From Podarcis tiliguerta (lineage: Eukaryota), in the NCBI GenBank assembly GCA_965153285.1, contig OZ229110.1: a stretch of DNA of 64,000 nucleotides; one strand, given 5' to 3'. Of this stretch, positions 1-35,105 are shown one piece after another. The first letter of the stretch is position 1; every line of letters starts with the position of its first letter. Under the pieces are notes generated by a model, which was not told the origin of the DNA, made no database searches, and saw only the letters and a program-made list of their open reading frames with translations. The translations under genes and the position numbers were made by a program.

Positions 1-1599
1 TCTGAAGAGTTCCCTTTCACACCAGAAGTTCAACTACATGCTATCTAAGGAGGGCAGGGGTTCATCCACTTTCTCATGCACACTACATCTTTAGCCCATG
101 ACCACAACAAGTTTCTGCCCTAATTGCATCAATTGGGGGGGGGGGCTATGCAGGAGTTTTAAACAGGCTCCTCAATAAAGCATTCAAGTGCCAACTTCCT
201 TTGAGGAATTTCCTAACATTTTAAAGAGAAACTCATCATGTCAGGCAACTCCCTGCAACACAGAGCACCACAAACCTATTTGGTTAGTACCATTTATTCT
301 ACTATACAATACTTGCTAATGCAAGTAGTTCCTATTACATGCAAACAGTTATTGCTACTAAAGTTCTATTGATTAAGTCATCTTATGGCTTTATTTGCAT
401 CAGGGATTCTTTCCCCCTACATACTGTGCTATTTTGCATTCCAGTTTCAGAGGTATTTTTCCATCAATTGATTCTCCCAAGCACTAAAAACTATTTCATT
501 CAATGGGAAAGATACATTTCTTTCCAACAGAACCTTGGCTGAGCTCAGGTCCTCACAGCTCATTTGTAAACAACCCACCTTCCCAAATTTCAAGGGAGAA
601 TAGGCAGAGACCTTTAAACATAGATCTCTTGTTTTGTGGTTAATTAAATGTTTCCTATGAATTTTTAGCCAATGGTAAACCAAAACCAGAAATATTTTTT
701 TCCTTACCAAAGTAGCCATTTACAGACAAGACCAAGAAAAAGATGCAGTATCCTCTTTAAGCTACAAGTAGTTGTTTTCTAAACAGAATCACAGCAGTCC
801 AGACGACAGGATCTGCACAGAAAAATCAGGTGCCTGAATTGCTGATCTCACTTATTTGAACTAAAAGCAAATTGATAATATAAGCAGGGAGACATCTTAG
901 TGACCCAAATAGTTGTACTGCAATGATTTAAAAAATTTTAAAACAGCAAACTCCTTCAGGTGCTTTCTATGGAAGTAGAAAAATGAGAATCATTTGCTTT
1001 CAAAAATGAATACTACCAATCTTGAATAGCAGTAGCAGTGTTATTATTTGTAATTTAGTCATTTTTTCAACTTGATAGATGATGTGCTGCTCTAACATAA
1101 GGGTACTTATGAGCAAATATGCAACTAGTGGGTAACTGAATAAAAGTTTATAGGCTCTTCTGAATGGAGAACAGAACATGTTGCGGCAAAGATTAGCCTT
1201 ATGCACACTTAAATCTGTGAAACTTCTTAGTCCAAGAGATCAGTGAATTTTCCCATTGAAGCAAAATATTATTTGCTCAAAAAAGGATTTGTTAAGGACT
1301 GTTTCAATTGTAGTTTCCTTGAAGTGCACTTCTACCTGCTTACAGATTCAAGATCCATGCACTCCTCATGCTACTGATTTTATTCACCAATATATGCTAT
1401 CATTGCCTAGAAAGGACACTGCATCCTTAGCCCATAACCATAATCTTGTCAGTTTCTTACGAATTACACCATCAGCCTTGTTAATTTGTCACTCTGAAAT
1501 TGTAAAAAAAGTACTACTAGGCTCATGCACTGATCCTAACATGGCACTACAGTTTTGCTACAAAGCACTAATGCTTATGGAACTATACACATCTCAAAA

Positions 1600-1625
1600 T
1601 GGAAGACATTGGTGATTTTGTTGTT
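1600..1625 (-). promoter_or_regulatory. Extended miR-7 binding site (TDMD trigger)
   Basis: Plus strand TGGAAGAC-ATTG-GTGATTTTGTTGTT versus miR-7 UGGAAGAC-UA-GUGAUUUUGUUGUU. Nucleotides 1-8 and 11-24 match, with a central 4x2 internal loop. Confidence 0.96.
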
Positions 1626-1688
1626 CTCAAACAACTTGTAACATTTTGTCCACAAGTATTAAAATATATTTATATGTATATATTATAC

Positions 1689-1704
1689 TATTGCACGTGC
1701 CCGG
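1689..1704 (-). promoter_or_regulatory. miR-25/32/92/363 family 8mer site with 3'-supplementary pairing
   Basis: Plus strand TATTGCAC-GTG-CCCGG versus miR-92a UAUUGCAC-UUGU-CCCGG. The transcript carries GTGCAATA (8mer) plus a match to miRNA nt 13-17. Confidence 0.85.
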
Positions 1705-4700
1705 TATTTGTTTTTCATAAGGGAAAGATTTCCTGCCAACATGAACAGATGCAGATCAAAATGTAAAATAAAAAGATTAAGGCAGTATTGCCTTGACACA
1801 GTACTTTTAAGATGCTACAGGAGAAGTACTACAAATGGGTTTCTTGGGCCATGTACAGCACTTGTTTCTCCAAGATTTTAAACTGAGTCCTCATGTAGTC
1901 AGGGGAGCTTGAGGGTAAGGAGATGGGGGAGTTGTTCTTTGCTGGAATTTTGTGCAACTGATATGGCCACTTTCTCTTATATCTATCCTGACAATTTAGG
2001 GAAACTAAACATTTTCACTGTGCCAGCATATTCTTTTACAAATTAAATCTGAGAGAAGTACGTAGGGAAGACAACATAAAGTCTACCGATAGAGAAGCAA
2101 ATCATCACTACACTTGATGTCTTCTGAATTTTCAGTTCCAGAATGAGAGAATGTTTCACTATGAAGCCTAACCCTATATCTAAAATCCCAATAAATTAAA
2201 CAGGAATTCCTGTTCAGAAGAACATAGAAGGAAATCCAACTACTTTTATTTCTGGACTTCTATTTGAATTAGGATTTAAGTATAGTTCAAAGCCAATCTA
2301 AATGATAACCATGACAATTTCCCCCCAGCAAGCTGACCCAAGTCATAAATCTGATTATGTTTAGCAGTTACAAATATTTACCTGTTTAATAATCTATTAA
2401 ACATTCCATTTTAAAAAACTGATTTGAATTAAGGAAAGCATCTGAATAAGCTTTCCTAAGTATTTATGTGAATCTTTTATTATATAAAAGGAACATAAGA
2501 TTAAGTGATGAGCAAATACCAGTATTTAGCTTGGGATGCTTCTTTCAAAACTATTAAATACCCCAAACAGCTGCTGTTTTCCATCACAGGAAATATTGCC
2601 ATTGCTACCTCACACCAGACATCAAGTAGCACTAAAAATGTTGAGAACCAAGACTGACCATTATAACATGCACTCCCATTTTTTTACCCAGATGGAAAAT
2701 ATTTTGAAGCCATTGGCAGATTTTAAACTCACATTTTCAGTAAGACTGAAGGTGCAGTGCTGAGGGCTTCAGCATAAGGAAGTGGGGGAGGCTTTTCTAA
2801 AACCAGGAATCAATCTACCCTCGCAAGGTGTGGCTAATAATCAGCTATTATTCCATGCTAAAGAAAATGTCCTATATGAATCATGTGCAATTGAGACAAA
2901 GCATTTTTTGTAAACATGTTAGAAACAGAATTTCCACCTTAACTTTCAGTGACCCACAGAATTAGTGAAGAAGCCCTTTCTGAGCATGTGTTGTCTTTGT
3001 TCATCCAACTGGTGGGAAATTTCACATATATTTTACACTATCAGTTGGTGCCTTTGGGTAAAAGCTTGGAGAAAGGTATTCTTCCTTTTGTTGCTGAATT
3101 CCCTAGGAAGACAGAGGATACCATGTAAAACCCATTGCTCCTGGGTTTGGTTTCAAGATTTCAACCCCTTGGGAAGGATCTTGCTAGAAAAGCAGCAACT
3201 CACAGGATCACCTCTCCTTTCCAGCAATTATGTAAATTTATATATGCAAGTTTTGTTTTTTAATAGTCTACTCAAAACAGTGAACAAAATTACTAAATGC
3301 TACTGTGCTTCAACTGCTTCACATAATGGCATCAAGATGGACACCTATAAATTGGCTTCTTTTAAAAGGAGAAAAATTCCAACAGGGCAATTTCGCAAGC
3401 TGTTTTTTTCCCTTCTTAAGAAGTTATTCCTCATTTTAAGTACACCTGTATATCCTTTTATTTCTGCACAATATTATCTTTAAAGGTTTGTGTAACAAGT
3501 TCCAAGGATATATCAATTTGCTCACTTCTCTAAATGCTATGTTGCGAGTAGGCAGTTATTTTACCAAGGTAGTTTGAAAGCGGGGAAATGCCAATCAAAT
3601 TAGGGTTGTGCCTCTATCTATATGCAAAATCATTTATAGAGTGCAAAAACTCTGAACAAAAAGTTTGCATGTTTCAGTGAAATGTCAGCCATTAATTTCA
3701 GTTGCTCTGAAAGGACAGTAGTATTTTTTCTATAATACAGGCTTTACATCTCCAATTCATGTTAAGGAGTGGAGCAGAAAATAAGCAGTGCTTCTTCATT
3801 TTCCCTCATGGAGATAAAGGAAGGCGTTTTCTTCACCAGAAGCCGTCAAAGCTCCTTTAGCAGCCTGTGTTGGGTCGACAGGAAAGGACCTGGAAACATA
3901 CACACACAAATTAGCTAATTAAAAGAGAAAATAATTTCACTCTAAATTAAGTTGAAACTGACTTCACATATACATTTTATGGGAACCTTGGAACTTTTAA
4001 AGATTTGGAGGAATTGTTTTACAGGTGAATTACAGTGCCTGTGACACCCCCCCCATGGTATTCCAAGCAGTTCTTATTCTGGGACCCCTCAGGTTTCACA
4101 CACCAAGAACAGATCCCGATTGCTGTGGCCAATGCTATATACAAGCAGTGCTAGAAGTCTACCTGGTACATCATTCAAGCTGTATGAAATAAGCCTTTTT
4201 CAGGGATAAATGCTAATTAATTCAAATATTGCAATGGAATAAAAAGATTGCCAGAGGAAGAAAACTTCAGAGAATAAACAGAAACTGTGAGCAGTTGGTG
4301 AGTGTTTCATAATTTCAATACAGCACACTTAGACTATGAGTCGGTTTCATGTCATGAGGGGAAATGGGAGACCCAGGTTCCTTCCCCCCTAGTTGGATGA
4401 CTCCAGAGAGGGTTGGCAGATTCATCCTCCTAAGATGGAGAAAGGGGGGAGCACAGAAAGGTAGACTGATGGAAGAAAAAAGAAAAAGAAAATCTGGGTT
4501 GCCATTGTCCCATGCATTCATCTAGTGAGAGAGAGTGATAACTGTCAACCTGCAGTCCAGCTGGCAGGAAGTGAATTTGGAGAGACGTTGCCGAGCCCAC
4601 TTAGGTAACCGAGCAGGGCAGTGTAAACACATCCAAGACTCCACTTCTCCTCTGCTGGAAAAACACTTTCAAGTGGGTAGTGGAAAACACCCAGATACTT

Positions 4701-6097: not shown

Positions 6098-6200
6098 CTT
6101 TTGCTTTATGGCTGCATAAATTATAACCAGGAACTCTTGCCTTTAGCTTTCTGATAATTTTCTTATTCTGACTGCCAATCAAGATGGTGCATGCATGGAC
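6098..6200 (-). ncRNA. OIP5-AS1: Cyrano predicted exon 2 (103 nt)
   Basis: Polypyrimidine tract plus CTAG acceptor, and a consensus AG|GTAAGT donor, in non-repeat sequence between two transposons. Confidence 0.6.
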
Positions 6201-10979: not shown

Positions 10980-11157
10980 CAGGAGCCAACTCCTGGGGGC
11001 TTCGGACCCCACAATAAAATATTTGAGGGGGCCGGGGCCCCACAAAGTTGACGGGCATCGCCATTCAAATAGCGTGTGGGAAATGCGTCATGTGATCGAT
11101 TATGTGGGGTGGGGCTTACCTGGTCCCCACGATATTTTATTCAAGTTGGAACCCCTG
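10980..11157. mobile_element. hAT-like MITE
   Basis: Imperfect TIRs caggagccaact / agttggaacccctg. Confidence 0.6.
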
Positions 11158-11199
11158 TCAGCTCAAGAAAGAAAATGGGACACATAATCGGCCCTGCGC

Positions 11200-12450
11200 A
11201 GTAACGATGACTAGAGGCCGGGCTAGTCGGCTGCAGGCACGACGAACTCCAGCTTTCCCTCGAAAAACACAGGCGCTACAGAGGACCCCCCTGGAAAATG
11301 CGCGCCGACCCCCAACCCACTTCTCAACACTGGGAAGAAGGCAGGCGATGGTTTCGCCACTGGGACGCCCAGTGAGGCCCAAGTATCCGCAGCCAATGCC
11401 TCGCCAACCCCACCCGCTCGAGAACTAGAGAGGCGGTGTGCCTTGTCTCTCTCTTTCTTGGCCGCTGCACAGCGCCGGGTGCCTGGAGCACCTCGCCCGT
11501 CCAGGGCCTCGCCAGAAGCCCTCGCTCACTGCCAGCTTTGGGGAGGAAGGGGAGAGGGGAAAGGGGGGGTCGCCCTGGCTTGGCCACCGAGGCCACGCAG
11601 CGATTCTCGACCCCCTCGTTCCAGGCGTAGCCGGCTCACAAGTTTGCGGCTCTGGAGGCAGAGAAAAGCGAGCTGCTTCCACCCTCACAAACCCCGGACG
11701 AGGAGGAGGAAGGAGGCCCCTTATGAGGTAAAAGGCCAGAACTGAGGTAATAAGAATAAGCTCCGGACCCCAGAACTTGTCTCTCTCCAGCGGCACAGAA
11801 CCGGGACGGGCACGTAAAGAGAGAGCAGGTTCCGGCCGGCTCAACCGACGGGCTTCACCAAGTGAGCTCCAAGCTCAAGGCTGGTTTTTTCTGTCCAGCA
11901 TGCCCTCGTGCCCACGAACCTTCCCCACCGAAGCCCCTGAGCCCGCCATGTCTTACCTCAGTTAAGGCCCCAGGGCCGCAGCCCACGGCGCTCTCCTTCC
12001 TTCCCCCTCACTCCGCCATCTTCCCCTCCTTACTTCGAGCGCCCAATGGGAGGCCGGCGCAGGGCGACGCAGCGGCCGTTCTACAGAACGCGGGTCCCAC
12101 CGAGTGGGCCGCTCTCCTGTCACTCACTTCTCCGCTTTGGGTTGCCATTGGGTAGGCTTTCCCCAAACGGCTGGACACGGAGAGGCGATTGGCCAACCGC
12201 GATGTGGTATACGCCTTCCTCCTCGCGAGTCCTATCGCCGCGTTGAAGAAGTGGGACGGGCGGGAGGCGGGGGTTAGGCGTTCGGTGTACTCAGTCGTTC
12301 AGGACGCCTCCTAAAGGAAGGAAGGGGTTGTGCGCGGTGGCGGGAATGCGCAAATTGGAAATTGTACTTTTGTTTATTCTGTTACATTTCCCCCCGCAGC
12401 TGCTCCTCCTCCTCGCTCAGTGCCCGCTGCCACTAATTTTCTCAAGTGAG
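11200..12450 (-). promoter_or_regulatory. CpG-island promoter and exon 1 of Cyrano
   Basis: High GC and CpG content; CCAAT boxes near 12043, 12147 and 12188; GC box near 12266; YY1 motif AAGATGGCGG on the minus strand (12013-12022); splice donor at 11956. Confidence 0.8.
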
Positions 12451-13447
12451 CGCGTCCAAACTGAATGGGGAATGTAGAGCTGGATCTTTCAGTGTACAAT
12501 AGGCGATCTTACTTGATGGGCCGATAGGGAACTATAACCGGGCTTCAATCCTAAACACACCAGGCCCACCCACAAGGCAAGGTGCTGCAACCGCCTCTGG
12601 CACAGAGACAGGCAAGCAGATTCCTCCCGTTTCTGGTCTAGATCTTCACTCACCCCTTCTTCACTGGCAGGGAGGGTGCCATTTTGTGGTTTGTCAAAAT
12701 GTCTTGGGTTGGCCCTGCCACTTACAAGCTAGACAGTTCTCTCAGCTTTAGTTCTGGGTGTCCTGCAAATTAAACTAGGGAGAATAAGCATTATATAAAG
12801 GGTGGTACATTCACGCCAGCTCTACTTAGGAAAGAGCTTCCTCAGCAGAAATAAGACTGCTTAGCATTTTGCTCTGGCAGGTTGGGAATGCTATCTTGAA
12901 ACCCAGTTGGAACAACTGCACAGAAAATGTAGACCAAAATCCTCATCAAAACTCAGATCACATTTGTCTCCACAGACCGAATCTTGCACTTCCTCGTTCC
13001 ACCATTATGCAAAAATAGATGTCAAAAAGAAACCCTCTGGGTTTTCAGAAGGGATTTGTCACCCACCACCATCAATAACGTGTGTAGGAATCATACATAT
13101 TCACATGGGATCTGTATGTCAGATTCTCCAGGTTTGCTCCTAGGTGGCGCTGTGAATGGTTAGCTCTCCCTTTTTTTCCTGGTGTGATCAGTGGGTACAG
13201 GTATGATCTGACAGTAATTTTCGGGGGGGGGGGCACTATAAAAATTCTGAAGTGTCATGTTGGAGCTCTATGACAGCACCCTAAAAGCTTAGTTTCATAA
13301 TGGTGTGGGTATTGTGACTATGCTTTAGGGGGAATATCCTGTAGGAAGCTATCCAGAGACCTGAACAAGGTTTCAGATACTGGTTGTTGCACCATAACAG
13401 AAGAGGTGTTTGCTATATGGGACAATTTTCTGTTGTGTCCTAGTCAC

Positions 13448-13590
13448 AGAATCATAGAACTGTCAAGTTGGAAGGGACCACGAAGGTCATCTAGTCTGAG
13501 CCCTGTAATGCAGAAATATTTCCCCCCAATGTGGGGCTCAAACCCACAACCCTGAGATTAAGAGTCTCATGTTCTGCCAACTGAGTACTA
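13448..13590 (-). mobile_element. tRNA-derived SINE with a CR1-type 3' tail
   Basis: Degenerate tRNA-Lys-like head plus (ATTCTRTG)-type CR1 tail; related copies at ~18980-19082 (+) and 49110-49255 (+). Confidence 0.65.
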
Positions 13591-16555: not shown

Positions 16556-16609
16556 TCAGTGAAGAAATCGAATGCTCATTTTTTGCTCTACATCCACCTT
16601 CTCCAAAAC
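16556..16609 (-). CDS. CHP1: CHP1 exon 7, coding part
   Basis: [17 protein letters not shown] followed by TGA; ttttttgcag acceptor. Confidence 0.97.
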   Translation of the reverse strand, partial: VLEKVDVEQKMSIRFLH

Positions 16610-19600
16610 CTGCAAAAAAAGTAGAATTGTTAACCATTTGTCACAGGAATCGAATTCTCTCTCAACATTTAGACCTTAGTCTTTTCTTAGGAAGCCATTC
16701 TTGTCAGCTTTCCTACTGCATGTCCTCTTGTGCTGCACAACTATTTTTTGTAGATCTTGACCTAGAGGTCATCAGTAATATATTTTATGGAAAATGAAAG
16801 CTGTACTTAGCAACACTTGCATTTGGAGTGTATTTAATTGCATTTATGGAATTCAAGATGATCCCTGGGCAGTCTATCAAAGCACTAACCAAACTAAATC
16901 AGCTTAATTTCAAGAAAGGCTCCTGTATCATGTACCCACAGATCATGCCTTGGAACAGCATGCAAAGTTGTCACACACTAAAAATATTTAGAAAAACTAA
17001 CGTGTCTAACAAGAATCATTTAAGCAATTAAGATAAATTGCAATTGTTATGAAGCTGAAGAGCACACCTCTGCCAATTTATGTTCAGATATGGGAAATAG
17101 CAAAATAACTGAAAAAATTATGCACATAAGCCTTCTATTCATTTGATTGCCCATCTGATTCGGAAATCCAAGCACTTAATTAGGTTTGCCATAATAAACA
17201 TTGTTTCCTGACCTTAACAAACTCTGCAAAGGAGATTGCACTGTCACCATCTTGATCAGCCTCCTGGATTGTTCTGTCAGCAATGCTGCCCAACTGTTCA
17301 TCCGAGATGTTTACGCCAACCATCATCCGCAAAACCTGCAGTATACAGAAACCCCAAAAGAATGCAATGTTAGTGTTTAACAAAGAATATGCTGTAAGTG
17401 CTAAGAAGGCACCAGACAAGTAAAGCTATTATTTTAAGTCAACCAAGAGAAGTTCCAGGACCAGCCCAATCAGGCAGCTGGTTTTAAATATCACAAAACA
17501 GCAGCAATTATTGCTCCCAAGGAGAGGTGCTTGGGACATTTCCTGATTCAGGTGCCAAAATACCTTAGCTGTCCTTGGCTGCTAGGTACTATACACCTTG
17601 ACTTGTGGCACAAACCACCATTTACTACACTGCCTCAAATAAAATATATTGAGGCAGTTTAGGGAAACTTTCTAGAAATAAGGAGATCAGTCCAGGTTCA
17701 TTGAATAACGTCAAGTGCACCACTTAAAAATACAACTTTCATCTCAAGAATTCTCACACCAGCAAGTTAACAATTTTCAGAAAGTTCTCCGCTTTTTTCT
17801 CTGAGCCACCCTTTTAGAGTAAAAATTTGCTCACGCCACACCAATTTTTTTATTGATAAGAAATACACTGGAAAGCAAAAAGAAACAACCCCTAGCAGTG
17901 CTTGACTTATAACACAGAACACAACTATTTATAATGTGATTATGGGACATCCAGATAGTATAAAACAATACAGCAAGCCATTGTTACACAAATCAAGTAT
18001 GGTGTTCTTTGAATGAGCAGCACATTGGTGTGAAATGCTCAAATCATGCCCACCTTGCTCCTCAGTTTGTCAAACAAACCACACTAGGAGCTTAGCTTTG
18101 TGTGCAAACCAGTACTTGTAGGCTAGTTCTCTCTAGAACAACCAGAAGAGCTTCATGATAAGCCCTAATAGTTTGTTTGTAACTATGGCATACCATGGTG
18201 TACAAACCTTTAAGTACCTTCTCCAGTGCTACAAGATACTCCACAGGTTATTTCTGGGCTGTTCTGGGTTTCAGCATTTGTAGCAGTGTTTTGGGTTCAC
18301 AGAATACCTTTCCCCACCACCGAGAGCACAGCTTTATAGGATTGGAGCTGGCTGCTGGTTTTGAACCAGAGTATATTTTTCATTGTTATAGCAAGGAGAG
18401 TTTAGCCTCATGACATACATTGGGTGAGGAATGTTTGACCTGTGTGCCAATTTGAGCCGCCAAGCTGTTTTTCCAAAAGCACACCCATTTGCCCATGAGC
18501 TGACATCACTACTGAACAGGGTTTAATCCTGCACTGGCTACACAATCCTGTCCCCAGCATAGAACAGGGTCACACAGCCTAGGCAGACAAGAGGAGATTA
18601 AAGATTGAGCAATATCTGTGTGGGTGTGGGGATTTAAAATGGAGGGGAGAGATTCACAAAGTCTTTTCTTACCTCTGCTGCTACTATAGTTATATGTTAT
18701 ATAATGCCTATGTATTATAATAATTTAGTATTATCATTCAACCAGACTTTACCTTAAAGGCTAAATAAGACAGTCATCCGAAAAATTTGCATTAATTTAT
18801 GGGCTGCAAAAGCTAAACATACCTGAAGCAGCTCCTCTCGAGAAATCTTGTCATCTTTATCTAGATCATATAGCCGAAAAGCAACTAGAGGAAATAAATT
18901 CAAGATTATTTATTTATATACTGCCCTTCATAGGGTATTTTACAAAATCAAAACACCTAACATAATACCCTCTTCTACACAGCTCAGTCCACAGAGCATG
19001 AGACCCTTCATCTCAGGGTCATGGGTCTGAGCCCCACACTGGGTGAAATATTTCTGCACTGCAGGGGATTGGACTGTATGACTATTTTTCTATGAAGAAC
19101 AAAAACCAATAACCCCTTCCTACGAACACATTGGGACGCGGGTGGTGCTGTGGGTAAAAGCCTCAGTGCCTAGGGCTTGCTGATCAAAAGGTCGGCGGTT
19201 CGAATCCCAGCGGCGGGGTGCGCTCCCGTTGTTCGGTCCCAGCGCCTGCCAACCTAGCAGTTCGAAAGCACTCCCGGGTGCAAGTAGATAAATAGGGACC
19301 GCTTACTAGCGGGAAGGTAAACGGCGTTTCCGTGTGCGGCTCTGGCTCGCCAGAGCAGCGATGTCACGCTGGCCACGTGACCCGGAAGTGTCTCCGGACA
19401 GCGCTGGCCCCCGGCCTCTTGAGTGAGATGGGCACACAACCCTAGAGTCTGTCAAGACTGGCCCGTACGGGCAGGGGTACCTTTACCTTTACCTTACGAA
19501 CACATTAAAAAGCCACAGATTGTTGAACCAGTCGTGTTGCTTAGGAACTGCCATAAATGGCAGAATGTTGAATAAAAATACAAAAGAAAATAAAAAGTAA

Positions 19601-22600
19601 ACTGTCGCATTTTGGTAGGGAATTTCTGGATAAGGGGAAAAAATGATATATAGGGGAATCCCTGCTTACGCAGGGGGTCTGCTCTGGGACACATGCAAGT
19701 ATGTTCCAGCCTGCTCCACCCCCTTGGGCCCCAAAAAAGGCATGAGTGTGTCAGCAGTCGCACGCATGATCATGTGCGAATGGGAGGTGCCTGTACTAAA
19801 AATCCCCGCTTTCTTTCCCACTGCTGCCATATACAGAATACATTATCGAACCACTGTAGACCCAGAGCAATGTGTGCCCCCATACTACAAACACTCTTCC
19901 CTTATTCTTCATAGTCATTGACTACTGGCAACCACAAAGACACCAATCAGTTAAAACTTGACTGTTCCTTGAGGTGATCATTTTTAAGAATAGGAGAGTA
20001 ACTGTGCTGCATCTGACTAAAGGCCTATCTTAGGAGTATAGAGGGAACATAATGGACTCATTTCACTGACTGGAGAAGACATTTTCAGGTTCACTCTAAA
20101 TGCCCAAGAAAGGAAATTTTGCTGTCCCAAAATAGTTATGCTTAAATTCTTGGGTGTTTTTTTTCTTTGACCAGTTACTGATACATGCTAGCACATTAAA
20201 CAGATTTCTTTTTCCTATCAGGCAGTAATTTATAGAATGCTTATATAGAATGCCTATATTTACCAGGAGTCATGAAAAGTCAGCCTGCTTCTACAGTTTT
20301 ACCAATAATTTAAGATTTGTTGAGTATCTTATGTAAATCTAAGAATATTATAAAGTAAAATGTGAGGTCATGGAAGATATATTACGATGATTCATTTAAA
20401 GCAGCACCATCAATGTGCACAGCATTTTCCAAATACAATTATTTCAGTACCATGTACTTAGGCTTGGTTATAGGCTTTGTTACATTAGGACAGAAATAAA
20501 TGGCTGTGCCCAACACTGTAGCACCATGCACACAACAGACTTCCAGGCATGCAATGGAATTTCCTGTTCCTCTCCTGTCCCTGTGCATCCTCAAAAACAG
20601 CTGGGGGCGGTATTGAGGGACCATCCAGAGTAGATTTTGGGAGGAGGAAAGAAAATGGAAATTCCATTGGATGGCTGGGCTACAACTCCCATCAGCAACA
20701 GCCAGTAAAAGTGACAAAAATCCACTTTCACTTAGGTAACTTTCTACTCTTGTTTCCATAAGATTTGTATCCAGGTTTAAACTAAGTTTAAAAGAAGAGG
20801 AACAGATTCCAAGCTGCAGGATTACAAAGAAGAATACAAAGCAGTACAATTAGCCTGAATAGATGTCCAATTAAAAATGTCTTACAGTACAGCTTGTTGC
20901 TCCGACTATTAAGTGGTTCTGGCCCATTCTGGTCTTTGCTTTTCTCATTATCCTCAATGGGTCGGAAGTGTGCCAAAGTCCTCATGAATCCACGAAAATT
21001 CACCTGGTCTTCTCTAAACCAGAGAAGATACACACAATCATATTACATTTTGCAAATCCATCAAGCAATATACTTCAAACAAGAATATCCAAACAAATTT
21101 ACCAGAGTTTGGAGAATGCAGTTTCATATTTTGCTGTTATTTTTCTATAATTGTTCCATGTACACTGTTTTGGTCTCTCTTCTCAGCTGTTATTTTATTT
21201 TGCTGTTTAACTGAACGTTATTGAACTACCATCTCAAAACTATAACTTAAACTATAAAAATCAGTCAGCCTTCAACAAGTACCAACCATCCCAGATCCTT
21301 AGATTAGCAGGGGAAGTGCTTCTTACTATTTTTGCTGGTTCTTGTTGGCAGTTGTACATTGACATGGGATAGAATTCTCTCTGTTGTGGCTCCTCAACTG
21401 AGAAGTTCTCTCCCCCTGGAGGCAGTATTGGGCTTCTGGCACCAGGTACTCACTCACCTGTTCACACAGGCATTTGGAGATATGCTGCTATTCAAAGTCT
21501 CAGTGCAATTTGCTGCTCCAAACATAACTATGTTTTTCCTTCTGAAAAATTGGCTGACTTTGTAGCCTTGGGGCTCTGTGCTTCTTTGAAATGTGCTCTC
21601 CCTACCTCTTGTTGATGTAGGAGAGAAAGGTTGATGGAACTTCTTTATTACTGAGCAGAGGTGCTTGCCTCCACCCAATCAGCAGGGGGAAGGATCCTGG
21701 CAATTACAACTGGCCAAAAATTTCAGACCCCTGCTTAGAGCATCAACTGTGAAAGGTAGTCAAGGTTTTACTTCTCAGCTAGTGAAGGGAAATTGGGAAG
21801 TGAAGTAGATATTTTTGGTGCCATTTGATAAATGTGGCAGAATATAAACAGAACTAAAGCGTCTAACAAATACCTAATATTAATAAAGCTTTACTTTGAA
21901 TAGTTAGTAACTGATGCTCCAGTCCCCAATATTGTATCTGAAGTCCAGCACATTGTTTTACGGTGTCAAGAATAGAATACAAGAATCCACATCTTAAATT
22001 AGTCCTAGGAGCACTTCACACCAAGCAACGTATTATGAAGAAACACTGTGCAACTTACCCTTCTGGAAAAAAGGCATTGATAATCCGGTCCCCCAGTGGG
22101 TTGATGGCAAGTTCTGGAATGCGCTGGAAATCTTCACGGCTACAATTTCAATGAAATCTACATCAATCCTTTAATAGAATAAGATCTCTGAACACCCATG
22201 TTAAACATTCATTTTTTATAATAGGGCTGATTGAAATTTATGGTTCAGATATCACACAACAGCTATGAGGGGTTTTTTAAGGTGTTTTTTTTTTTAAGTA
22301 AAGATCCAGTATGTTAAGCTCATTGATCATGAAAATAGTAAACCTCAGATCAAGAAAATGAGTTTTGTGCTGCGTACTTTTATATTTTCAGTTCATGACA
22401 CCTATCACCAATAGAAAAATCCCAGTTGTGTAGTATTAATGTACAGCTATATAGATTTTTTAAAAAGAAGGTAAAGGACCCCTGGATGGTTAAGTCCAGT
22501 CAAAGGCAACTATGGGGTGTGGCGCTCATCTCGCTTCAGGCTGAGGAATCCAGCGTATGTCCACAGACAACTTTCAGGGTCATGTGGCCAACATGACTAA

Positions 22601-25600
22601 ACCATTTCTGGTGCAACGAAACACCGTGACGGAAGCAAAAGCACACGGAAACATTGTTTACCTTTGTGCCACAGCGGTACCTATTTATCTACTTGCACTA
22701 GTGTGCTTTCGAAGTGCTAGGTTGGCAGAAGCTGGAACAGAGCAACTGAACAATACTTTGCAGATAATTTGCAAGTGTCTTCAGCTTTGTTTGCTCTCCC
22801 TCCTCCGATAATAAATGACCAAAAGCCCTGCACAAACCAGCTTCACCTGTATCATTCCACTTAGAGGTCAGCTAATTATGCAAAGCCTAGAGGGACACCC
22901 CACGGCTAGACAATCAAAGAGGCAAAGTAAACAAATAACTGGTAAGCACTTTTCTTCCTTCCCTAACCAGTGAAAAAAAAGGGGGGGAGAGTTTTTTTTC
23001 TTTCTTTTCTGGTGGTGTTTATGTTGTTAGTTCTCCCTAAATAGCTTTCCTCCATATTAAAAACGAAGGGTGTTTTTTTTATAATTTAAAGGAGACTATC
23101 TTTTTGCTTGCTTTCCCTCCCTACCTCGCTTTGATAAAAAGGGAAAGATTGGTGGGATGAGGGCTTTTGGGGAGAGCTGGCTGTCTTATGCTGAAATGGG
23201 TACTGTATGAGAATGATGGGGAGGGTGTTTTTCAGTAAGTAGTGAAAGCAAATGTGTGTCTACTCACATGCAAGCCCTATTGGATTCAATGGGGCTTTCT
23301 CCAAGGAAAGTAGAAGTTACTTTAGTTGAAATCAGTGGGGCTTATGCATGCAGAGATTCCACTTAGACCTTTGAGTGGGGAAGCAGATGTCATGGGGAGG
23401 TACGACGGGACCCTCTGCTACTGTGGGGAAGCGTGGCACACCCTCCACTGCTGCAAGGAGGTATGGTGATACCTTCTGCCCCTGTGGGGAGGCCCAGCAA
23501 GGCTCTCTGCCACCACAGATACATAAGATTTATCAAGATATCATGATATTTGGCTGGTGATATTACTATGATGTTGAAAACCAGCTATCACCCAGCCCTA
23601 CTCACCACCGCTGAGTGGATTCGAACCACCAACCTTCCAACTGGCAAACCCAAGAGGCTCAGTAGTTTAGATCAGTGATTCCCAATCTTGGGTCTCCAGC
23701 TGTTTTTGGACTACAACTCCCACCATCCCTAGCAAGCAAGGCCAGGGGTCAGGGATGATGGGAATTGTAGTCCGAAAACAGCTGGAGTCCCAAGGTTGGG
23801 AAACACTGACTTAGACCACAGCATCACCCGCATCCCTGTACAGCTATATATAACCATCCTGAAAAAAGGCTGCCACTCAGTGCTGTGTTATGTATATCAA
23901 AATGTGTATCAGTTTAATTCCTGAGGCAGGTAACCAGGGCAAGCAATAGTTAACTTATTTTGTTTGGGTAATTTATCTGACACCAGCTTAACCTTGGCTG
24001 CTGAATGTCAGCCAAAAGAGGAACTTTTTACAGCTGTTCTGAAAGTGCTCAGGCTTACTCTGATAGATATCTAGGTGAAGGTTCATCTGCTCTCAAGGAC
24101 ATGGGAAGGAGTCAGCAAGAATGACTTTATGTATCTTTGTTTGGATTTGGCACACAGATGACATGGTCAAAGCATTGCTCTTAGTTAATCTTAGCTGTCA
24201 TGATGATATAAAAGTAGGTGTATGGTTTATTTAAGATCACACTTCTCCTCCCAAGTTTACATCACTCCACATCTATCTAGCAACTAAGACTACTATGCAC
24301 TACTACTATGCACTACTATGGGACTTGCTTCCCAGTCAACATGCACTGGATACTCTATCCTACTTATGATTTCTCAGTATCTGCAGTATGCAACAATAAA
24401 ATAAATATATCCATTTGTACTTACTTGCTGGATATATTCAGCATCTAATAGGAGTTTAAACTACTTAGATTCATTATTTAGCCATGATAGTGTTCTTTAG
24501 GCAATCTTAGTACCTGGACACTATTTATTGTTTGGAAGTATTATATATTTTTTCTTTTGCTTGAGTCAACCCACCTGATGTGATGCCCTTCATAATTACC
24601 CTTTGATTCACTATGATCTGTCTACGGTACACTTTTGTACTCCATGGTTCAAAAACTATAATCAAGGATTGCTGAAATAGTGGGTTGAATTAAAAGCAAT
24701 ACATTTCCTATATTTACCACTTTGTACCAAAGCTTGCAGTGTAGAAAGAGATCACTAGAATCCCCTCATTTTAAGAATGCTCACACTATGAATGGCCTCT
24801 GGAATGTGACAGAAGTCTCTGAAGTATTTTTTGCCCATAAAACTCAAAGGAGAAACCCCTCAACAATAGAATATATGCAGAATCTGGTGTGTTGATCCTA
24901 CAGTAGGCTTGAATCAATCTGACTCCAGCTACAGCCTTGATTTCATGGAATACTAACCTCTTAAGCATCATCTTCCATGTACATCTAGCACTGTCAAATG
25001 GCTCTTTCACTTTATATTTCAATAAAATAAATTCTATTTCCCAGTTCACATAGCAATTGTTCTTTCTTTATGCAGCCATAGTTGCCAGTTCCAATTTGCA
25101 ACAGGGAATTATTAGCTAAGGAAAATAATACTTCCAAAGCAGATGCATTGTTCCTTGGGAAGAATGGAGTAGCAAGTCCACTGTTCACACCACTGTTCAT
25201 TCAGGAGTGACCCAGTGGGAAAATTCAATGCTAATGGCCCTCAAGGCCTTTCTAAAATCTGTAAAGTCTTGTTTACAGACAGCTTCAGAGGATAGTAAAA
25301 AGCAATGGGGCAGAGAGAATATCATCTCTGCTTCTGCCTCAGCCACTATGAATTAGCATATCCCAAAAATTGTTTCCACCTATACATAAGGTATAGAATA
25401 TCCAAATTCACTATGCCAGTGGCTCCCAATTAGTGGTTTGCAGACCCCGGGGGGCCATGTATCCCACCCAGGGGGTCCGTTGTACTACTGACATAACAAA
25501 AACTACCATAGAGATATGAAGATATTCAAAAATAGGGAGTCCATGGCTTAGCTTTTAAAAAACATGTGTCTGCAGTACAGTATTTAGCTAATTGGGAACC

Positions 25601-28600
25601 TCTGTACTTCAGAAAATTTAAGCCTGATACAACCTTTGAGGCTGGGTTTTTTGTTTAGTTTTTAAAGAATCAAGTAAGGTGATTCTGTTTGCAGTTGATA
25701 AGAGCCAAGCAAGTCTAGTGACTTTGAACCAAACCAGATGTGACCCAGGAAATCTGAATAAGATTTTTCACTTCTCTCTCATATTAAAGACAACGGGGTG
25801 TGAAATAATTTGGATAGGGACTGGTGTGCTGGGGGAAGTGTTATTAATAATTTTACCTTGTGCCATTTTCCTGATTTAAACAGCACTCAACTTTAAACTG
25901 CTATTTACCCAGAAGGGGAAAAACAGCAATTTCCAATGAAACATTTAAACTGGAGAAATTGCAGTGGGGGAAAAGTTACCCCAAGTACTCCACCTCCCCT
26001 TGGGTCCAAACAGTTTGACAGATATATGAAAAGCAGCAAATCTCCTGTTACATGTATGTGTCAGACTCTCCAGTGTTCTAAAACATACCCTCCCTGTTTG
26101 TAAAGATTCAGCTTCTGAAATCTGAATACATCAGCTTCTAATTTCTATATTTTATGGCTTACCTTAAGGTTAAACATTAACCAACTGTAACTACTGAATT
26201 TAAAATCTATTACTGTCATTCCTACCAGCCACTGCGCTTATGAAGGGGACATTATCCAAGTAAGAACACTAACTGGAAAACACTACACACATCATAAAAG
26301 TAAATGAATACTGAAAAGCAAGCTGTGCTTTTTTTTTAAGCAAAACCCACTTCACCTGGCTTAGACTGGAACTTACAGGAAATATTTTCTTCTGGTCACA
26401 TGCCATAGAACACTATCCAACAGGATCTCCCATGAATTAATGCATTTTTGAAGCCTACTTGCATGCTTTCATTGTGCTTATTCTGAATCACAGAAATCCA
26501 AACATCTACTCAATAAGTTGCTCTGCCAAACCATATACTTTACACATATTGCAGCATATTTATAGAGTGGGGCATACCTTCAGCAACACTTCCACTTTCT
26601 GTAATGTCTGAACAGAGAGACTGCACCACAGAACTAGCTCATGTTTGTACTACTACTTCATTTTTATTTCAGTTTGACTCTTCCATCTTACTTTACAGTA
26701 CCATCAATACTTATTCAAACATTTCATCATAAGAGAAAGTGACAAAAAGTCAAGTTTATGAATTAATGAGTTGTCCTGCCTTGCTCAGGTGACATAAAAG
26801 TATATGGTTAATACTGTGATCAGCATTCCAATCTATTTACAAAGAGGTTTTTTAAATACTAAAAGTTATTGTTTCTAGACTTTTCTGTACTAAGTTGCTC
26901 CTAAGATTATATCTATTTCCAAATCCTCTTCACTTCATAATCCTCTCTTGTTTAAGGCAAGTGATTAACTCCAACTACAGGAGCCATATATTTTGTTGGA
27001 TTTAAGGGAGGATTTGTCAGCATGTTGGCGTGAGAACTGGGTCTGATCAGTGCCTAGATGTGTAATTGCCCAGGAACCACATATACACTGCCTTTGGTTC
27101 CATGACAGCAGACAGGCAGGATATAAATGTAAATATAAAATATATATATAAATATAAATATACATAGTGGGTTTCAGTTTAAAAAGAACACTTTGTTTTG
27201 ACATTAATATCTACATCAATCTGGTATAGGCTATAAGGATGGCATTTTAGCCATTCTGGAGAGTCCATAAGTTTGAGAAATAGCAGTCTGCCCTGAAATC
27301 AGTCAGGGATTAAAAGCCACACTGCAATTTGAATTTTTATTCCTACAGCCACTCCCAAATTAACCAACTCACTAGAAATTTTGCAGTTCCATACTTAACA
27401 TGAATTTATGATCTTTTCTCTTGCTTAAACTGTTTTGGCTCAAAATATAGGGAAGACAACTTGGCAGGAGGTAACAAAAATGATCTACCCTGTATTCTAA
27501 GCTGAAACAGTTTAAGTAAAACTCAGGAGTACTGTAGTACCTTAATGATTAGAAGATTCATTATTAAGGCACAATGAAGTGGGCTCTTGTCTATAAACAC
27601 TTATACCACAATAAAACTGTTAAGCCTTGATGGTGTCACATGATTCCTTCTTGTTTTTATAAGCTGTGTAGGCCAGATATGTGTCTCTTACAAATTTGGA
27701 AAATGATTTATGGAGGGTGGGAAAAGGAATAAATGTTCTCCCATATGGAAGCGGAGGTTTATTTCTGTTCTTATTTTCATCATGTATTTTGTTTTTTATA
27801 TTGTAATTTTATGTTGTGAACCACCCTGAGATCTACAGGTATAGGGCGGTATACAAATTTTAACAACAATAACAACTGCTTTGCTGTTCTCAATTCTGCT
27901 CCTCAGCACCTTTTAAATGGTGCTGCCTTGAAAGCTTTGCTGAATTGCAGGGGAAAGTTTTTAAAGGAAATGCTGTACTTCTACTGTGATGTGCATTGTT
28001 ACGTATGCAGCTCATTTCTCATCTCCACTAGTATTACCCAATTATGTATATGATTATGACAATTACGACAAGGCTTGATGTTCTAAATTCGACTATGTAT
28101 TACTGGCTCCGCTCTTTTGTTCCTTAAAACACAGCTTCAGACATGCATTTTGGAGGAAGGGGGCGTTGAACATGGGACCCTTGTACAAAGGCTCCTTACA
28201 CAATTTAGAACCCAGGGTTTGGGATTGCAAAGGGGAAAGTCTATGTATGTAGTAGACCTTCCTCCCAACATATACAGGGCAGGGGGGGCTGAACTGGCAA
28301 GTAATGCAACAGTGAGAGCTGGGCCGGTAAGTGCAGTCCCATTGTCCCTCACATGATTGTAACTGCATGAAGCATAAAACCTGAACAGGGATTATGGGCT
28401 GCACCCAATACACTCAAACAACAGGAATTCTCTGGTTCCTCCTTCCCCCACTGCATCCCAATGTGTGTCCCAAATAGCCTTCTGGGGATCAGAGGACTCT
28501 CAGGAAATGCATGGAATGGGAGGAAGAGGGCTGCAGCTAGAGGGGGTAAATCAAGGGAATCCTGGCAGAGGCAGTGAGCAAGTCAATACCGTAAAGAACT

Positions 28601-31600
28601 AAGCAAAAGCAGTGAGTCAGGACAATGAAGTTTGCTAAAGAGTACATACCTAAGAGTGCCATTCTCTCCTTTGTCTAGGCTGGTAAACCGACTGTAAAGA
28701 CGAGTAATCTGACTGTGGGAAACTGAAGCAAAAATAAATTAAAATTTACAATTGAACAGCAACATTTTAAAATCAATTAATCCACACTACTTAATACAGA
28801 GTAATTTCATTACATTTCAGGGGTCAGGACATTGATTTTGCTGGATGTTTACATTTTAAAATGACTTCCATTCAGATTTTAAGTCCTATTACCCCTCTAT
28901 TGGTAAAACATTTCACTCCTTTATTAGTAAAACCAGGGCTTTTTTTCAGCTGGAACTCGCTGCAATTTAGTTCCGCCACCTCTCAGATGGACGCCATTGC
29001 CATTCTAAGACAACGAGGGAGCCATTCATGGTGAGTTCCAGTACCTCTTTCTAGACAAATAGCATTTGGTAAAACATTTCACTAAACAGACATGTCTTAA
29101 GAAGAGGTATGACATAGGTAAATTTATTACAGCCTTGCAAGAAAGTCCACAAAACATTTCCAAGGTTGCATGATGTCTAGTGGCCTATAGCTAACGAATA
29201 CAGTAGGCCTGCAGGTGAGGAACAGATATATTTTCCTCTCCCATCAGACTACCACATTTTTTTGTTGGTTGTAGATGAAAGTGCTTCACTTTTTCTGTGA
29301 CCTGCACAGAAACCAAGTGGACAATCTGTCCTTCCTTCACCAGCTCACCAGGATGGATTCCATACACTTGTTTGCAACCAATTCCTTGTCACCTATGGCA
29401 ACCAGGCAAAGGCCAACTACAAGGCTGAAGTACTAACTAGTCCACTGACTTGGCTAAGAGTGAAGCCTGTTCCTAGTCTCTCTTTAAATGCAGACAGTTC
29501 TGGAGCCCTAGGATACCTCAGCTTCTGGATAAAATCTAGTTTCCTTTCCAGCTGAAAGTAGTTTAAAGTTTAAACCACTCAGCTGCCAACACTGCAAAAA
29601 ACTCAATTAAAGCAATTCCAAATGGTTTTAAAGCATGCTAAATTGAGGAAGGAACAACCTTGTTAACTCCACAGAACACGAATCAACTTGATCTCTCTTT
29701 AAAAAACTGTTCCCCAGGGCTCTGATAAAAGAATACGAATACAGTATTCTAAATTTTCTGATCTATCATACTGGTTTCAGTGACTAGCTTTACCTAGCAA
29801 AAAATACTGTAGATGGCAGGTTTCAATGAAAATATGGCACATCCTCTCCTCACTACCAATAGCCTTTTAAGTTGCTAAGGTAGATCTCCCTGGCTACAAA
29901 GCTCTCCCTGAAATAGTTATTTTTAATTTTGATGATTAAATTTGCAGGTTCCATTTGCATTATTCCCCAGCAAACTATAACTTTAAAACAAGAGTGTGTC
30001 TGAAACTTTAAGCAGCTAAGGTTACAAGACTAGGTTTGTCTTTTTCTCTTGATATTAACTAAGGAAACATCTGAAAAAGTGTTATGAAATGCAAACATTC
30101 CAGGCAGAAAGTTTAAAAAAATTATTGATACACATAATCTGGATATTGTTCTTGTCTGACTAACAATCACCACCATGTAATTTACATTTCAAAGTCCACA
30201 TGCAGTGGCCTATTTGCCAAATAGCTGAAAGAACCATTTTAATATTACACATGGTATTTATAGTTTTGTCATACTTTTTTTGTAATTATATGCAAAACCA
30301 CATATTTTTACTTTGAGTTATTTGCAATAAGACTCTTCTTTATAAGTTAACGGACATGGGGCTTTATGACACACAGTATGTAAGCCACATTTAATTAAGT
30401 GTTTGACAGCAAGTTGGGGGTTTCCGACATTGAGATGAGCTTGCAAAAATTCTTATTACAAAAACTGATGGTGTAATTAATTATGAGTGGGATCTAACTG
30501 GTGGCCTCGCACTCAGACTTTTGATTCAGTGAACACCTCTGTTAATGGAAGTGGAAGGAATAATAATAATAATAATAATAGGGACGCAGGTGGCGCTGTG
30601 GGTTAAATCACAGAGCCTAGGACTTGCCGATCAGAAGGTCGGTGGTTCGAATCCCCACAACGGAGTGAGCTCCCGTTGCTCAGTCCCTGCTCCTGCCAAT
30701 CTAGCAGTTCGAAAGCACGTCAAAGTGCAAGTAGATAAATAGGTACTGCTGCGGCGGGAAGGTAAATGGTGTTTCCGTGTGCTGCTCTGGTTCACCAGAA
30801 GCGGCTTAGTCATGCTGGCCACATGACCCGGAAGCTGTACGCCAGCTCCCTCGGCCAATAAAGCAAGATGAGCGCCGCAACCCCAGAGTCGGTCACGACT
30901 GGACCTAATGGTCAGGGGTCCCTTTACCTTTACTTTTTAATAATAATAATTTATTATTTATACCCCGCCCATCTGACTGGTCTTCCCCAGCCACTCTGGG
31001 CGGCTTCCAAAAAAATATTAAAATACTGTAATACATCAAACATTAAAAGCTTCCCTAAACAGGGCTGCCTTCCCAAAGTGGGCTTTCCCAGACAGTCCCC
31101 CAATCGTCTACCCTTTTCAAAAGGGTCCCCAAACCCTGGAGCCAATTTTTGGGGACACTGGGGGCTGCAGCAAGCAACCAGCTTTCGTCCATTAGCAGAG
31201 GCATTCAACTGATCAAATACCTATCCATGGGCACAAAGGTACCAACTGGATTGACCCCATGAATTTGATAATTATGATAAACAGCTACCTGATCTGTTTC
31301 TTAAATAAGCCTTGAGACAGTAACTGAAACGTATCCTTCACCAAAACAAAAACATAAATTTTTGCATAAATTATATGCAATGAGATTGCCATCTCTAACT
31401 TCTCTTGCCAGAGCAATAGCTGTGCTAGTCTCTTGCGATGAAGACTGTTGTGGTACCTTAAGGACTTTTAGCATAAGCTTCCATGGACTTTTCCATTAGA
31501 TGCTGTATCTGCTAAAGTAGACTGTAGTCCAAACAACTGCTTGTGCACAATGAATTTGTTAACAATGTTGTTTTTTGTAATGAATCTTGCTTACGATGAA

Positions 31601-34600
31601 AAACAGAATCACTGAATAAAGCACAAAATAGCAACACTTACATGCACATTAAAGTTTCTGATTTATAATGTATTTATGTGTAGCCTTGCCAAGACCATAA
31701 CTCGTCTGCAGTCTTCATGAAGTGTGATCTCAACTACAGCAAGGGCCTAATCTCAAAAAATAAATATCAAATTCAGCCAATGCCAAAGCCTGGCTTTGAA
31801 AAGCACACAATTAACATCATACACTTTGATGTAGTCTCTGAAGTCATTGTGTATCTTAGCAAGTACATGAGAAATGTCCCATAGCAAGACATTGTAGCTG
31901 GCATTACGAACTGCAGGTGTTAAGGATGAATGACTCCCAATCAGCACCTCACATAACTGCTCTTTCATTAAAACTAGGTACATAAGCATATGATAGACAT
32001 AAGCTATCCTTAGACACTGTTTCACAGCAATAGTATCTGGAATGCACACTTTTCTAGAAATTGCTGCTCTGACAGGCTGCCAAGATCATTTTCTATGATG
32101 GCTCATTCCTCTATAGTTGACTAAAAAGGTACTACATAATTTCCAATTTTGATTCAGATTTTTCAGTTGATGTCTCAATTCCAGTCTTCTGACCTTTTCT
32201 TAAATGTTTAGTGATCCAGACCTTTACTGAATAAACAGTATTCTTCAGGTACTATTTCTGCTTCTTGCCAGTAAATTTACTATTTTGGCTCATTTTTAAA
32301 AGCCTTCGCATTTCATACTAATATATAAGTAAATGTATATGTGATGTCCATACAATATTGTTGCTGCTGCTAACATCTTTCTCAAAAATATGCTGATCTG
32401 AGAAAGTTGTGCTAGTTTATTTTACCATAAGCCACATACAGACATCCAACAAGAAAATGTAAAAAGCAGGGATGCTTTTTGCTAGCCCCAAACCACTACT
32501 GAATATAAACCATTGGGCTGCTTCTATACACCTTATGCTCCCGCTAATAATTCTATTTATTAAGGGTCAAATAATTGCATAACATAAAATTTAGCTTTCC
32601 GAGAATAAAGCACTACTCAGAATAGTAGTATTAACCTAGGGGTAGGCAACCTAAGGTCCGTGGGCCGGATGCGGCCCAATCGCCTTCTCAATCCGGCCTG
32701 CGGACGGTCCAGGAATCAGCGTGTTTTTATGTGAGTAGAATGTGTGCTTTTATTTAAAATGCATCTCTGGGTTATTTGTGGGGCATAGGAATTTGTTTCC
32801 CCCCCCCCCAAAAAAAATATAGTCCGGCCCACCACATGGTCTGAGGGACGGTGGACTGGCTCACGGCTGAAAAAGGTTGCCGACCCCTATACTAAACTGA
32901 TAGCACTATGACGACAAAATCTAATTGAATTTGTTTTTCTTAGTGCCAAGTTTGTACCATTGAACCAGTAATGAAAAAAATCAGTAGCTACTAGAGCATT
33001 AAACTATGTAATATAGCATGTATCACAAGGAGCAATAATTAGTGACTGTAGCTTTTGCTTAGTTTCCTCTAGAATTCCTCCTTACTGTGTTACTCTCAGT
33101 AAGCCTATCAGTATAGACATGCTATATCCCTATGGTAAATACAGTAGTTGCTTACATACACAAAGTAATTATTGAAAATAATATATTATTAGCTTCTTTC
33201 ATTGCAATTAAACAATTGAAAAAGGTGAGCTCAATCATGCAATAAGGCAGTAATCCACAGATCACCTGGCACTACCAGGAACTGCATGTTGGCAATTTAG
33301 AAAATGGAATGTCCTGACTGAACTTTTGTACTTTCACGTTTCCTATTTTTTCAAGCGAACTAACTACATGCTACATACTAGGAATCAAATATCTGTAGAT
33401 GGATATATTGTCATTTGCTACTAGTCAAAACAGTAGACGGGATTTGCTAATACAGAACTGGGGTAGGAAAAATAATAGTCATCTGTAACTAGTCTGTAGC
33501 TATAACCTAATAGCACATTTGTTTTCTGTTGTATTTTTGCCCACTATATAACGTTCTGTTGGGCTATGGGAGATGTACGTTACTAAGCCATGGAGCCATC
33601 AAGAGGCCTTAGGCAAGTTGCTATCTGAGCCTCAGAAAACAAGCTCTAAAATGAGAATTCCAACAATATCATGTGGGTGTTCATCTTTGTAATAAGATAA
33701 AGGCTATAATGTTTTACATCAAAAGTGCCCTAAATAAAGTTGTGCTAAAGACTATCAGAACTGCTTACACAATTGCTTCAGGGTGTCTCATGGAAAGGAA
33801 TTTATAAATGAAATAAAAAATGTTAACTAGTCCTTTGAATGCTCCAGTGCATGTCAAGAGGAAATGCATTATCAATCTATACATAATGTGCCACCAATGT
33901 GCATGACACTTAGATTCATAGAATTGCAGGAGGGGCACCTTCAACACTTTGAAAGAAAATCTAGAATGCAGCAAGCAACACTTCTGATACAGGTTGGAGC
34001 ATTCACAACACAAAGAGGCTTGATTTAAGCTAGCACTTGTCCTGAATGCTTACCTCAGAAACAAGCGTAGCACTTGTAATTAAGAGGGCCTGTATAGAGT
34101 TATTTTCCCTTCTCTACTCTGCTACAACTCACATGGAAAGAGCTCCTACAAGGGCTTTACACTCACCATAATTATATGGGGCAAATTAAGCAGAATAATG
34201 ATTTTAAAAATCACTAAGGCAGGATAAAGTAGGATAAAAATGCTCATCCGACCCACTGTCAGGTTGAGCACTTGACTTTAAAACAGCACATAGCAAACTA
34301 ATGTTGCAACCATTTCGAAAGTTCAGATGTTGCCGATTCATCAAGGAGAGGGCAACTCACAGTAGTCAGACGTAAAAAAAACCCCTCTCTTTTCTTACAG
34401 AAGGCTACCACACACACAAGGTGTGTATTCGGTCGGAATAGTATCGACGCCTACCGGTAGGTGCCAAGTTTATCAGGTCGGTAACTATAGGCTGCGCCTC
34501 ACGCAGCATACCTTGTACCAGAAGAGCGAAGAATTTGGCAACCGGGCAACTTGAAGAGGAAGGAGACACGCCTTTGGGAACATGACCTTTCTCGTCACGC

Positions 34601-35105
34601 GGCAAAAGGTGGTGACCAGAGGCAACAGAATGTGGGGCTCCTGTGCTTTTAAGAGGTGCGCAGGAGGAGGAAAGTCGGCAGGTGCCACTTCTCACTCCCG
34701 AGTCCTGTGACAGGATAAGCGGCACCTGCCGAAGTTCCTTTCCTTTCCCACACAGCTCCCAGGCTGCGGGCGACCCCGCCTCAGGCCAAGCCACAGGCGC
34801 CTCAGTCAAGGGTCACCCAATGCCGCCGAAAAGGCTCCCAGGTATATCGGCGAGGAATGGCGGTTGACAAGTAGCGACGCCTCTTCCCTCAGCCCGGACA
34901 CTTTCGGCCCTGGAAGGTGAAAACCCGCAGGTGGCTCGCCCGCCCGCCTCGCGTTACGAGACCGTGAATGGTTTTCGGCCGCAGAAAGCAAGGCCAGCCC
35001 AGCGCCCCCGGTCTCCAGCTGCTTCTCTCGGTACTCACAGCCTGTCTCCTTCTTGATCTCCTCAATCTCCTCGTCCCGAAGCAGCGTGGAAGCCCGGGAG
35101 CCCAT
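16556..35105 (-). CDS. CHP1: Calcineurin B homologous protein 1 (EF-hand NHE1 cofactor), 195 aa. Exons 35105-35039, 28722-28650, 22139-22059, 21013-20886, 18884-18823, 17335-17213, 16609-16556
   Basis: Spliced translation [74 protein letters not shown]...[28 protein letters not shown]...[32 protein letters not shown]. Exon lengths 67+73+81+128+62+123+54 = 588 nt; all introns GT-AG; N-myristoylation motif MGxxxS. Confidence 0.98.
17213..17335 (-). CDS. CHP1: CHP1 exon 6 (EF-hand 4)
   Basis: [41 protein letters not shown]; gcag acceptor, gtcagg donor. Confidence 0.97.
18823..18884 (-). CDS. CHP1: CHP1 exon 5 (EF-hand 3)
   Basis: [21 protein letters not shown]; ctag acceptor, gtatgt donor. Confidence 0.97.
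19133..19494 (+). mobile_element. Sauria SINE, full length, young
   Basis: GGGACGCGGGTGG head with pol III B box, (ACCTTT)n tail, perfect 12-bp TSD TACGAACACATT (19121-19132 / 19495-19506). Confidence 0.93.
20886..21013 (-). CDS. CHP1: CHP1 exon 4
   Basis: [42 protein letters not shown]; ttag acceptor, gtaaga donor. Confidence 0.97.
22059..22139 (-). CDS. CHP1: CHP1 exon 3
   Basis: [27 protein letters not shown]; gtag acceptor, gtaagt donor. Confidence 0.97.
22468..23836 (-). mobile_element. Sauria SINE split by two nested insertions (~22750-23600 and MITE 23673-23808)
   Basis: Tail and body at 22468-22748; head resumes at 23601-23672 and 23809-23836. Confidence 0.75.
23673..23808. mobile_element. 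Palindromic hAT-like MITE
   Basis: About 58-bp inverted arms cagtgattcccaa...ttgggaaacactg; degenerate 8-bp TSD gtttagat/acttagac. Confidence 0.8.
28650..28722 (-). CDS. CHP1: CHP1 exon 2
   Basis: [25 protein letters not shown]; ttcag acceptor, gtatgt donor. Confidence 0.97.
30581..30935 (+). mobile_element. Sauria SINE inserted in the (AAT)n tail of a LINE 3' fragment (~30936-31070)
   Basis: Head gggacgcaggtggcgctgtg, tail cctttacctttac, (AAT)n on both sides. Confidence 0.9.
32637..32889. mobile_element. hAT-like MITE
   Basis: TIRs taggggtaggcaacc / ggttgccgaccccta; same family as 50570-50806 and 54411-54646. Confidence 0.8.

Follow-up and report, generated by a model that had tools for sequence, protein, structure and literature searches.

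The locus and its neighbours

The window (the whole 64-kb stretch of lizard DNA that was analysed) carries on its minus strand the coding region of CHP1 and, lying so that CHP1 is directly upstream of it on the same strand, a predicted gene for the lncRNA Cyrano (alternatively called OIP5-AS1), whose predicted last exon contains a site extensively complementary to the microRNA miR-7 (Table 1). The seven coding pieces of CHP1 are found at approximately 35.1, 28.6, 22.1, 20.9, 18.8, 17.3 and 16.6 kb. Two of them were compared with solved structures, the top PDB matches being CHP1/p22, and exon 6 is identical to human CHP1 at 47 of 48 positions (E 4.9e-22), with CHP2 scoring behind. A position next to CHP1 had been claimed in the initial annotation of this DNA, and both the coding pieces at 16.6-35.1 kb and the PDB matches bear it out. 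Human OIP5-AS1 presumably has CHP1 in the same place, directly upstream and on the same strand. The conserved surroundings of Cyrano are CHP1, which in tetrapods lies upstream on its strand, and OIP5 at the 3' end. The other neighbour of Cyrano, in zebrafish too, is OIP5 (PMC6347452), which is not in the window, its expected position being beyond the window start.

The remainder of the neighbourhood can be described briefly. An AATAAA at 12373-12378 (-), approximately 350 nt upstream of the TISU start of Cyrano, is a possible poly(A) signal of CHP1; if it is used as such, the 3' end of CHP1 abuts the Cyrano promoter and the CHP1 3'UTR is approximately 4.2 kb long. The only Rfam hit in the window, with no lncRNA family matched, lies after the stop codon of CHP1 and ahead of the Cyrano promoter: a tRNA-like match (13523-13597 (-), 34.6 bits, gathering score 29) that ARAGORN did not call and that is probably a fragment of a tRNA-derived SINE. 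The CHP1 promoter has its own CpG island at 34-36 kb and a third island is seen at 61-62.4 kb (GC 0.64, observed/expected 0.90), with an ATG-started ORF of 223 aa between the two (57307-57978 (+)) that has no Pfam match. The human gene order would lead one to expect EXD1, followed by the INO80 promoter, around this ORF and the third island. ORF fragments on the minus strand (40687-41740, 53407-53754 and 58713-58949) resemble the tails of LINE retrotransposons, for example in the motif RRGRQRTRWLDSV, and are without a Pfam match; a Pfam search of five ORFs at 40-59 kb gave no match.

Table 1. Features of the CHP1-Cyrano locus in the window; exons are predicted from sequence only, and a slash marks a splice boundary.
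Feature	Position	Strand	Remarks
Extensively complementary miR-7 site, TDMD-trigger architecture	1600..1625	-	14-nt pairing, CAAU loop, 8-nt match; architecture defined in 10.1101/279687
UGCAUGA Rbfox motif, LncLOOM WGCAUGA element	1523..1529	-	PMC7798263
UGUAUAG Pumilio-type element, LncLOOM element 6	1583..1589	-	10 nt downstream of the miR-7 seed match; PMC7798263
GUGCAAUA, miR-25/92 8mer seed match, LncLOOM element 2	1689..1696	-	PMC7798263
Predicted terminal (third) exon, truncated by the window start	1..3889	-	Acceptor tttccag/G at 3889
Predicted exon 2, 103 nt	6098..6200	-	Pyrimidine tract and AG before, AAG/GTAAGT after
Predicted exon 1	11957..12030	-	Start set just upstream of the TISU; donor GAG/GTAAGA after 11957
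AUGGCG in TISU/YY1-type context (GAAGATGGCGGA), LncLOOM element 1	12008..12019	-	AUGGCG itself at 12019-12014
CpG island with predicted Cyrano promoter	~11.0-12.7 kb (11000..12700)		GC 0.61, observed/expected 0.76
CHP1 coding region	16556..35105	-	Seven coding pieces

The miR-7 site and its pairing

Read directly from the window, the minus strand from 1625 to 1600 is AACAACAAAATCAC-CAAT-GTCTTCCA (as a whole, AACAACAAAATCACCAATGTCTTCCA), and this re-reading of the letters agrees exactly with the site sequence first reported. The duplex with miR-7-5p, for which we used what we take to be the miRBase sequence, was computed with a local script and comprises stretches of 8 bp and 14 bp separated by a 2x4-nt internal loop, with an energy of -29.6 kcal/mol. 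Nucleotides 1-8 and 11-24 of the microRNA are all Watson-Crick paired to the site, giving 22 pairs, while the target CAAU faces nucleotides 9-10 (UA); the 8mer seed match, the loop opposite nucleotides 9-10 and the 14 contiguous 3' pairs that had been described for the site are thereby reproduced. What defines the miR-7 site of Cyrano is that only nucleotides 9 and 10 of miR-7 are left without a Watson-Crick partner (10.1101/279687), and the lizard site pairs in exactly this manner. When the site was searched for as a gapped pattern, with the four central bases free and three mismatches tolerated, there was a single match in the 64-kb window.

The surroundings of the site were also folded. The 1500-1720 fold is no more stable than those of shuffled sequences (z = -0.87), on which ground a structured element around the miR-7 site was rejected. 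Both the MFE and the centroid folds of this interval contain a mini-hairpin, GUUGUU-UGAG-AACAAC, at 1620-1657 (-), which covers those bases of the site to which the 3' end of miR-7 pairs.

Elsewhere in the predicted terminal exon there are two more miR-7 seeds of the 7mer-m8 type (GTCTTCC, at 2066-2072 and 3106-3112 (-)), both without an A opposite nucleotide 1 and without 3' pairing. With the main site, the terminal-exon part contains three miR-7 seeds, where a first-order model gives an expectation of 0.16 (P about 6e-4). For mammalian Cyrano, a single miR-7 site is described.

Cyrano signature elements around the site

Nine short elements, with their order and approximate distances, are conserved in the Cyrano of 17-18 vertebrates (Ross et al., PMC7798263). 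The lizard sequence was compared with the published motifs only; of the four elements inside the constrained 67-nt block, which BLAST can align between vertebrates, the comparison covers the three whose letters are given in the text of PMC7798263. Seven of the nine LncLOOM elements were found on the minus strand, with the published order and spacing kept, the two halves of the miR-7 site being among them. The miR-25/92 element precedes the miR-7 site by 63 nt, where the published distance is approximately 60 (PMC7798263), and it retains eight of the nine bases of the published 9-mer (CGUGCAAUA vs UGUGCAAUA), the first base being C and not U and the seed match being intact. UGCAUGA follows the Pumilio element at 53 nt downstream, against a published distance of approximately 55 (PMC7798263). 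At the other end of the predicted transcript, the AUGGCG at 12019-12008 (-) opens a three-codon ORF, ATG GCG GAG TGA (ATGGCGGAGTGA); published Cyrano has an ORF of 2-3 codons at its very 5' end (PMC7798263).

The last two of the nine are the 3'-end elements of published Cyrano: CUAUGCA, a miR-153 seed, and a GCAAUAAA poly(A) signal that follows it after approximately 100 nt (PMC7798263). Within the window, neither CUAUGCA nor the GCAAUAAA poly(A) signal is present on the minus strand below 1600, and the gene therefore probably continues beyond the window start, its terminal exon running past position 1. A 3' end lying beyond the window start explains, though it does not prove, both the missing 3'-end elements and the absence of OIP5 from the window.

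Gene model, promoter and coding potential

Published Cyrano is a three-exon gene with the miR-7 site in exon 3 (PMC13125240). For the lizard, the initial annotation had proposed a spliced, ORF-less transcript that starts at the CpG island near 12 kb, uses the junctions 11957>6200 and 6098>3889 and has the site 2.26 kb into its terminal exon, and each part of this proposal fits what we found in the sequence. Consensus splice signals are present at all the predicted sites; the site lies 2264 nt inside the predicted last exon, counted from the predicted acceptor at 3889; and the predicted TISU start sits within the CpG island of approximately 11.0-12.7 kb. Internal-exon candidates numbered only two in a strict scan of the interval, at 6200-6098 and 8295-8013. 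From these signals we infer that the locus is probably transcribed, with the exon structure predicted in Table 1.

The coding potential was considered exon by exon. There is no credible ORF in the terminal-exon part (1-3889), where the longest ATG-started ORF on the minus strand encodes 90 aa, and the predicted exons show no long ORF, only the three-codon one at the 5' end. Two ORFs were rejected for their junk-like translations, namely the 90-aa ORF itself (447-719, minus strand) and a GTG-started ORF of 172 aa on the plus strand (2965-3483).

Identity of the transcript and competing explanations

The architecture of the miR-7 site, seven of the nine conserved elements, a TISU within a CpG island and CHP1 upstream all agree with the Cyrano/OIP5-AS1 identity that had been assigned to this locus. 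As judged from these sequence features, orthology with Cyrano can be held with great confidence, while a TDMD function of the site in lizards, which is argued by analogy, appears likely. We consider it very probable that the window from 1 to approximately 12,030 (-) represents the 5' and central part of a squamate Cyrano/OIP5-AS1 orthologue, with the miR-7 decay site as modelled.

That the site might have arisen by chance, or be a relic that is neither transcribed nor functional, is scarcely credible, given that none of 100 dinucleotide-preserving shuffles contained a match to the site pattern at up to three mismatches (chance expectation 0), that six further independent short elements stand at their published distances, and that 26 of 26 positions kept over the lizard-mammal divergence are not expected of unselected sequence. 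The site could instead be transcribed within a different transcript model, with other internal exons, another start or read-through from CHP1, for which one may point to exon calls made from splice consensus only, to the second internal-exon candidate at 8295-8013 in the strict scan, and to the AATAAA at 12378, which may be the poly(A) signal of CHP1 and is only approximately 350 nt upstream of the TISU. However, the TISU/AUGGCG with its three-codon ORF is located in a CpG island at the place of the published Cyrano 5' end (PMC7798263), and the published structure likewise has three exons with the site in the third (PMC13125240), which together make such a model very unlikely.

A subtler alternative accepts the Cyrano orthologue but holds that the lizard site serves mainly for high-affinity binding of miR-7, as a sponge or in the regulation of Cyrano, and not as a decay trigger. 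Three seeds against 0.16 expected would suit titration or repression, and the fall of Cyrano itself in Zswim8-null mice implies that, with TDMD switched off, repression can act through the site (PMC10620050). Against this, the same Cyrano-type architecture causes miR-7 to be destroyed with multiple turnover in mouse (10.1101/279687), seed-type binding alone hardly explains 22 kept pairs and a central loop, and ZSWIM8 orthologues are found broadly across animals, including flies and worms (PMC10620050); binding as the main role is an improbable account, and we retain the decay trigger as the preferred reading. With two extra canonical seeds beside the TDMD site in the same exon, the RNA could both destroy miR-7 and be targeted by it or buffer it. 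That Cyrano acts in both capacities in squamates, which should have neither miR-671 nor Cdr1as, within a simpler, ancestral circuit whose output is unlike the mammalian one, is a speculative proposal that we regard as unlikely.

Proposed mechanism of miR-7 decay

To our knowledge, genetic demonstration of TDMD has come from mouse and cultured cells only. If the lizard transcript is a Cyrano with a decay trigger, its transcription would start within the CpG island, at the TISU/YY1-type element of approximately 12.0 kb, and the RNA would be spliced from 11957 to 6200 and from 6098 to 3889. By analogy with mouse, AGO-bound miR-7 would dock on the site in the last exon, where the central loop would prevent slicing and the extensive 3' pairing would bring AGO into a conformation to which the ZSWIM8 cullin-RING ligase responds; AGO would then be degraded and miR-7 lost. 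The Cyrano lncRNA itself would be tuned by the miR-25/92, Pumilio and Rbfox elements on either side of the site. The dependence of Cyrano-directed miR-7 decay on ZSWIM8 has been shown for mouse (10.1101/279687; PMC10620050), and it is a decay of this ZSWIM8-dependent kind that we infer for lizards.

What is already known and what is added

Cyrano has been reported as conserved throughout bony vertebrates, in a curated set that includes chicken and Xenopus (PMC7798263). These two bracket the squamates, which are not represented in that study's 18 curated species, and a lizard Cyrano is accordingly real but expected; the novelty claimed for it in the initial annotation was overstated. The description of the transcript as a 'hidden' lncRNA may mean only that it is not named: in the literature searched we found no paper naming a lizard Cyrano, which is a gap in naming and not in knowledge. 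The downstream circuit outside mammals had also been presented as uncharacterised, but PMC13125240 already states that Cyrano is older than both miR-671, which occurs in marsupials and placentals, and Cdr1as, which is confined to placentals; that the circuit should differ outside mammals is consequently no new point. Zebrafish and mouse mutants of Cyrano have no overt phenotype (PMC6347452; 10.1101/279687).

The present analysis assigns a hitherto unnamed part of a lizard genome its proper name and supplies a working model for it, and so extends to a squamate the record of a gene that fish, frog, chicken and mammals are known to have. It could also provide material for asking what role Cyrano-directed miR-7 decay plays in an amniote that has neither Cdr1as nor miR-671, a question that has already been posed (PMC13125240) and that may be asked just as well of chicken, frog and fish. 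A lizard Cyrano will be no surprise to the specialist; the observation is genuine and its interpretation correct, and both are of an ordinary kind.

Comparison with known systems

The closest known system is Cyrano/OIP5-AS1 itself (Oip5os1 in mouse, cyrano in zebrafish), with which the lizard locus has in common the architecture of the miR-7 site, paired at all but nucleotides 9-10; the miR-25/92, Pumilio and Rbfox elements at their published distances; a TISU/AUGGCG start with an ORF of 2-3 codons and no long ORF; and three exons, predicted in the lizard, with the site in the last. It differs in the miR-25/92 9-mer, which begins with C and not U, in the two extra miR-7 7mer-m8 seeds of the lizard exon part, and in that the lizard window is without the 3'-end elements and OIP5. 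The mammalian partners of Cyrano, miR-671 and Cdr1as, should both be absent from lizards (PMC13125240). A second point of comparison is the libra/Nrep trigger for TDMD of miR-29b, which differs from Cyrano in its microRNA, its locus and its flanking elements and has no sequence relation to it, but which is likewise an endogenous vertebrate transcript whose deeply conserved, extensively complementary site directs the decay of one microRNA (PMC7798263, PMC10620050).
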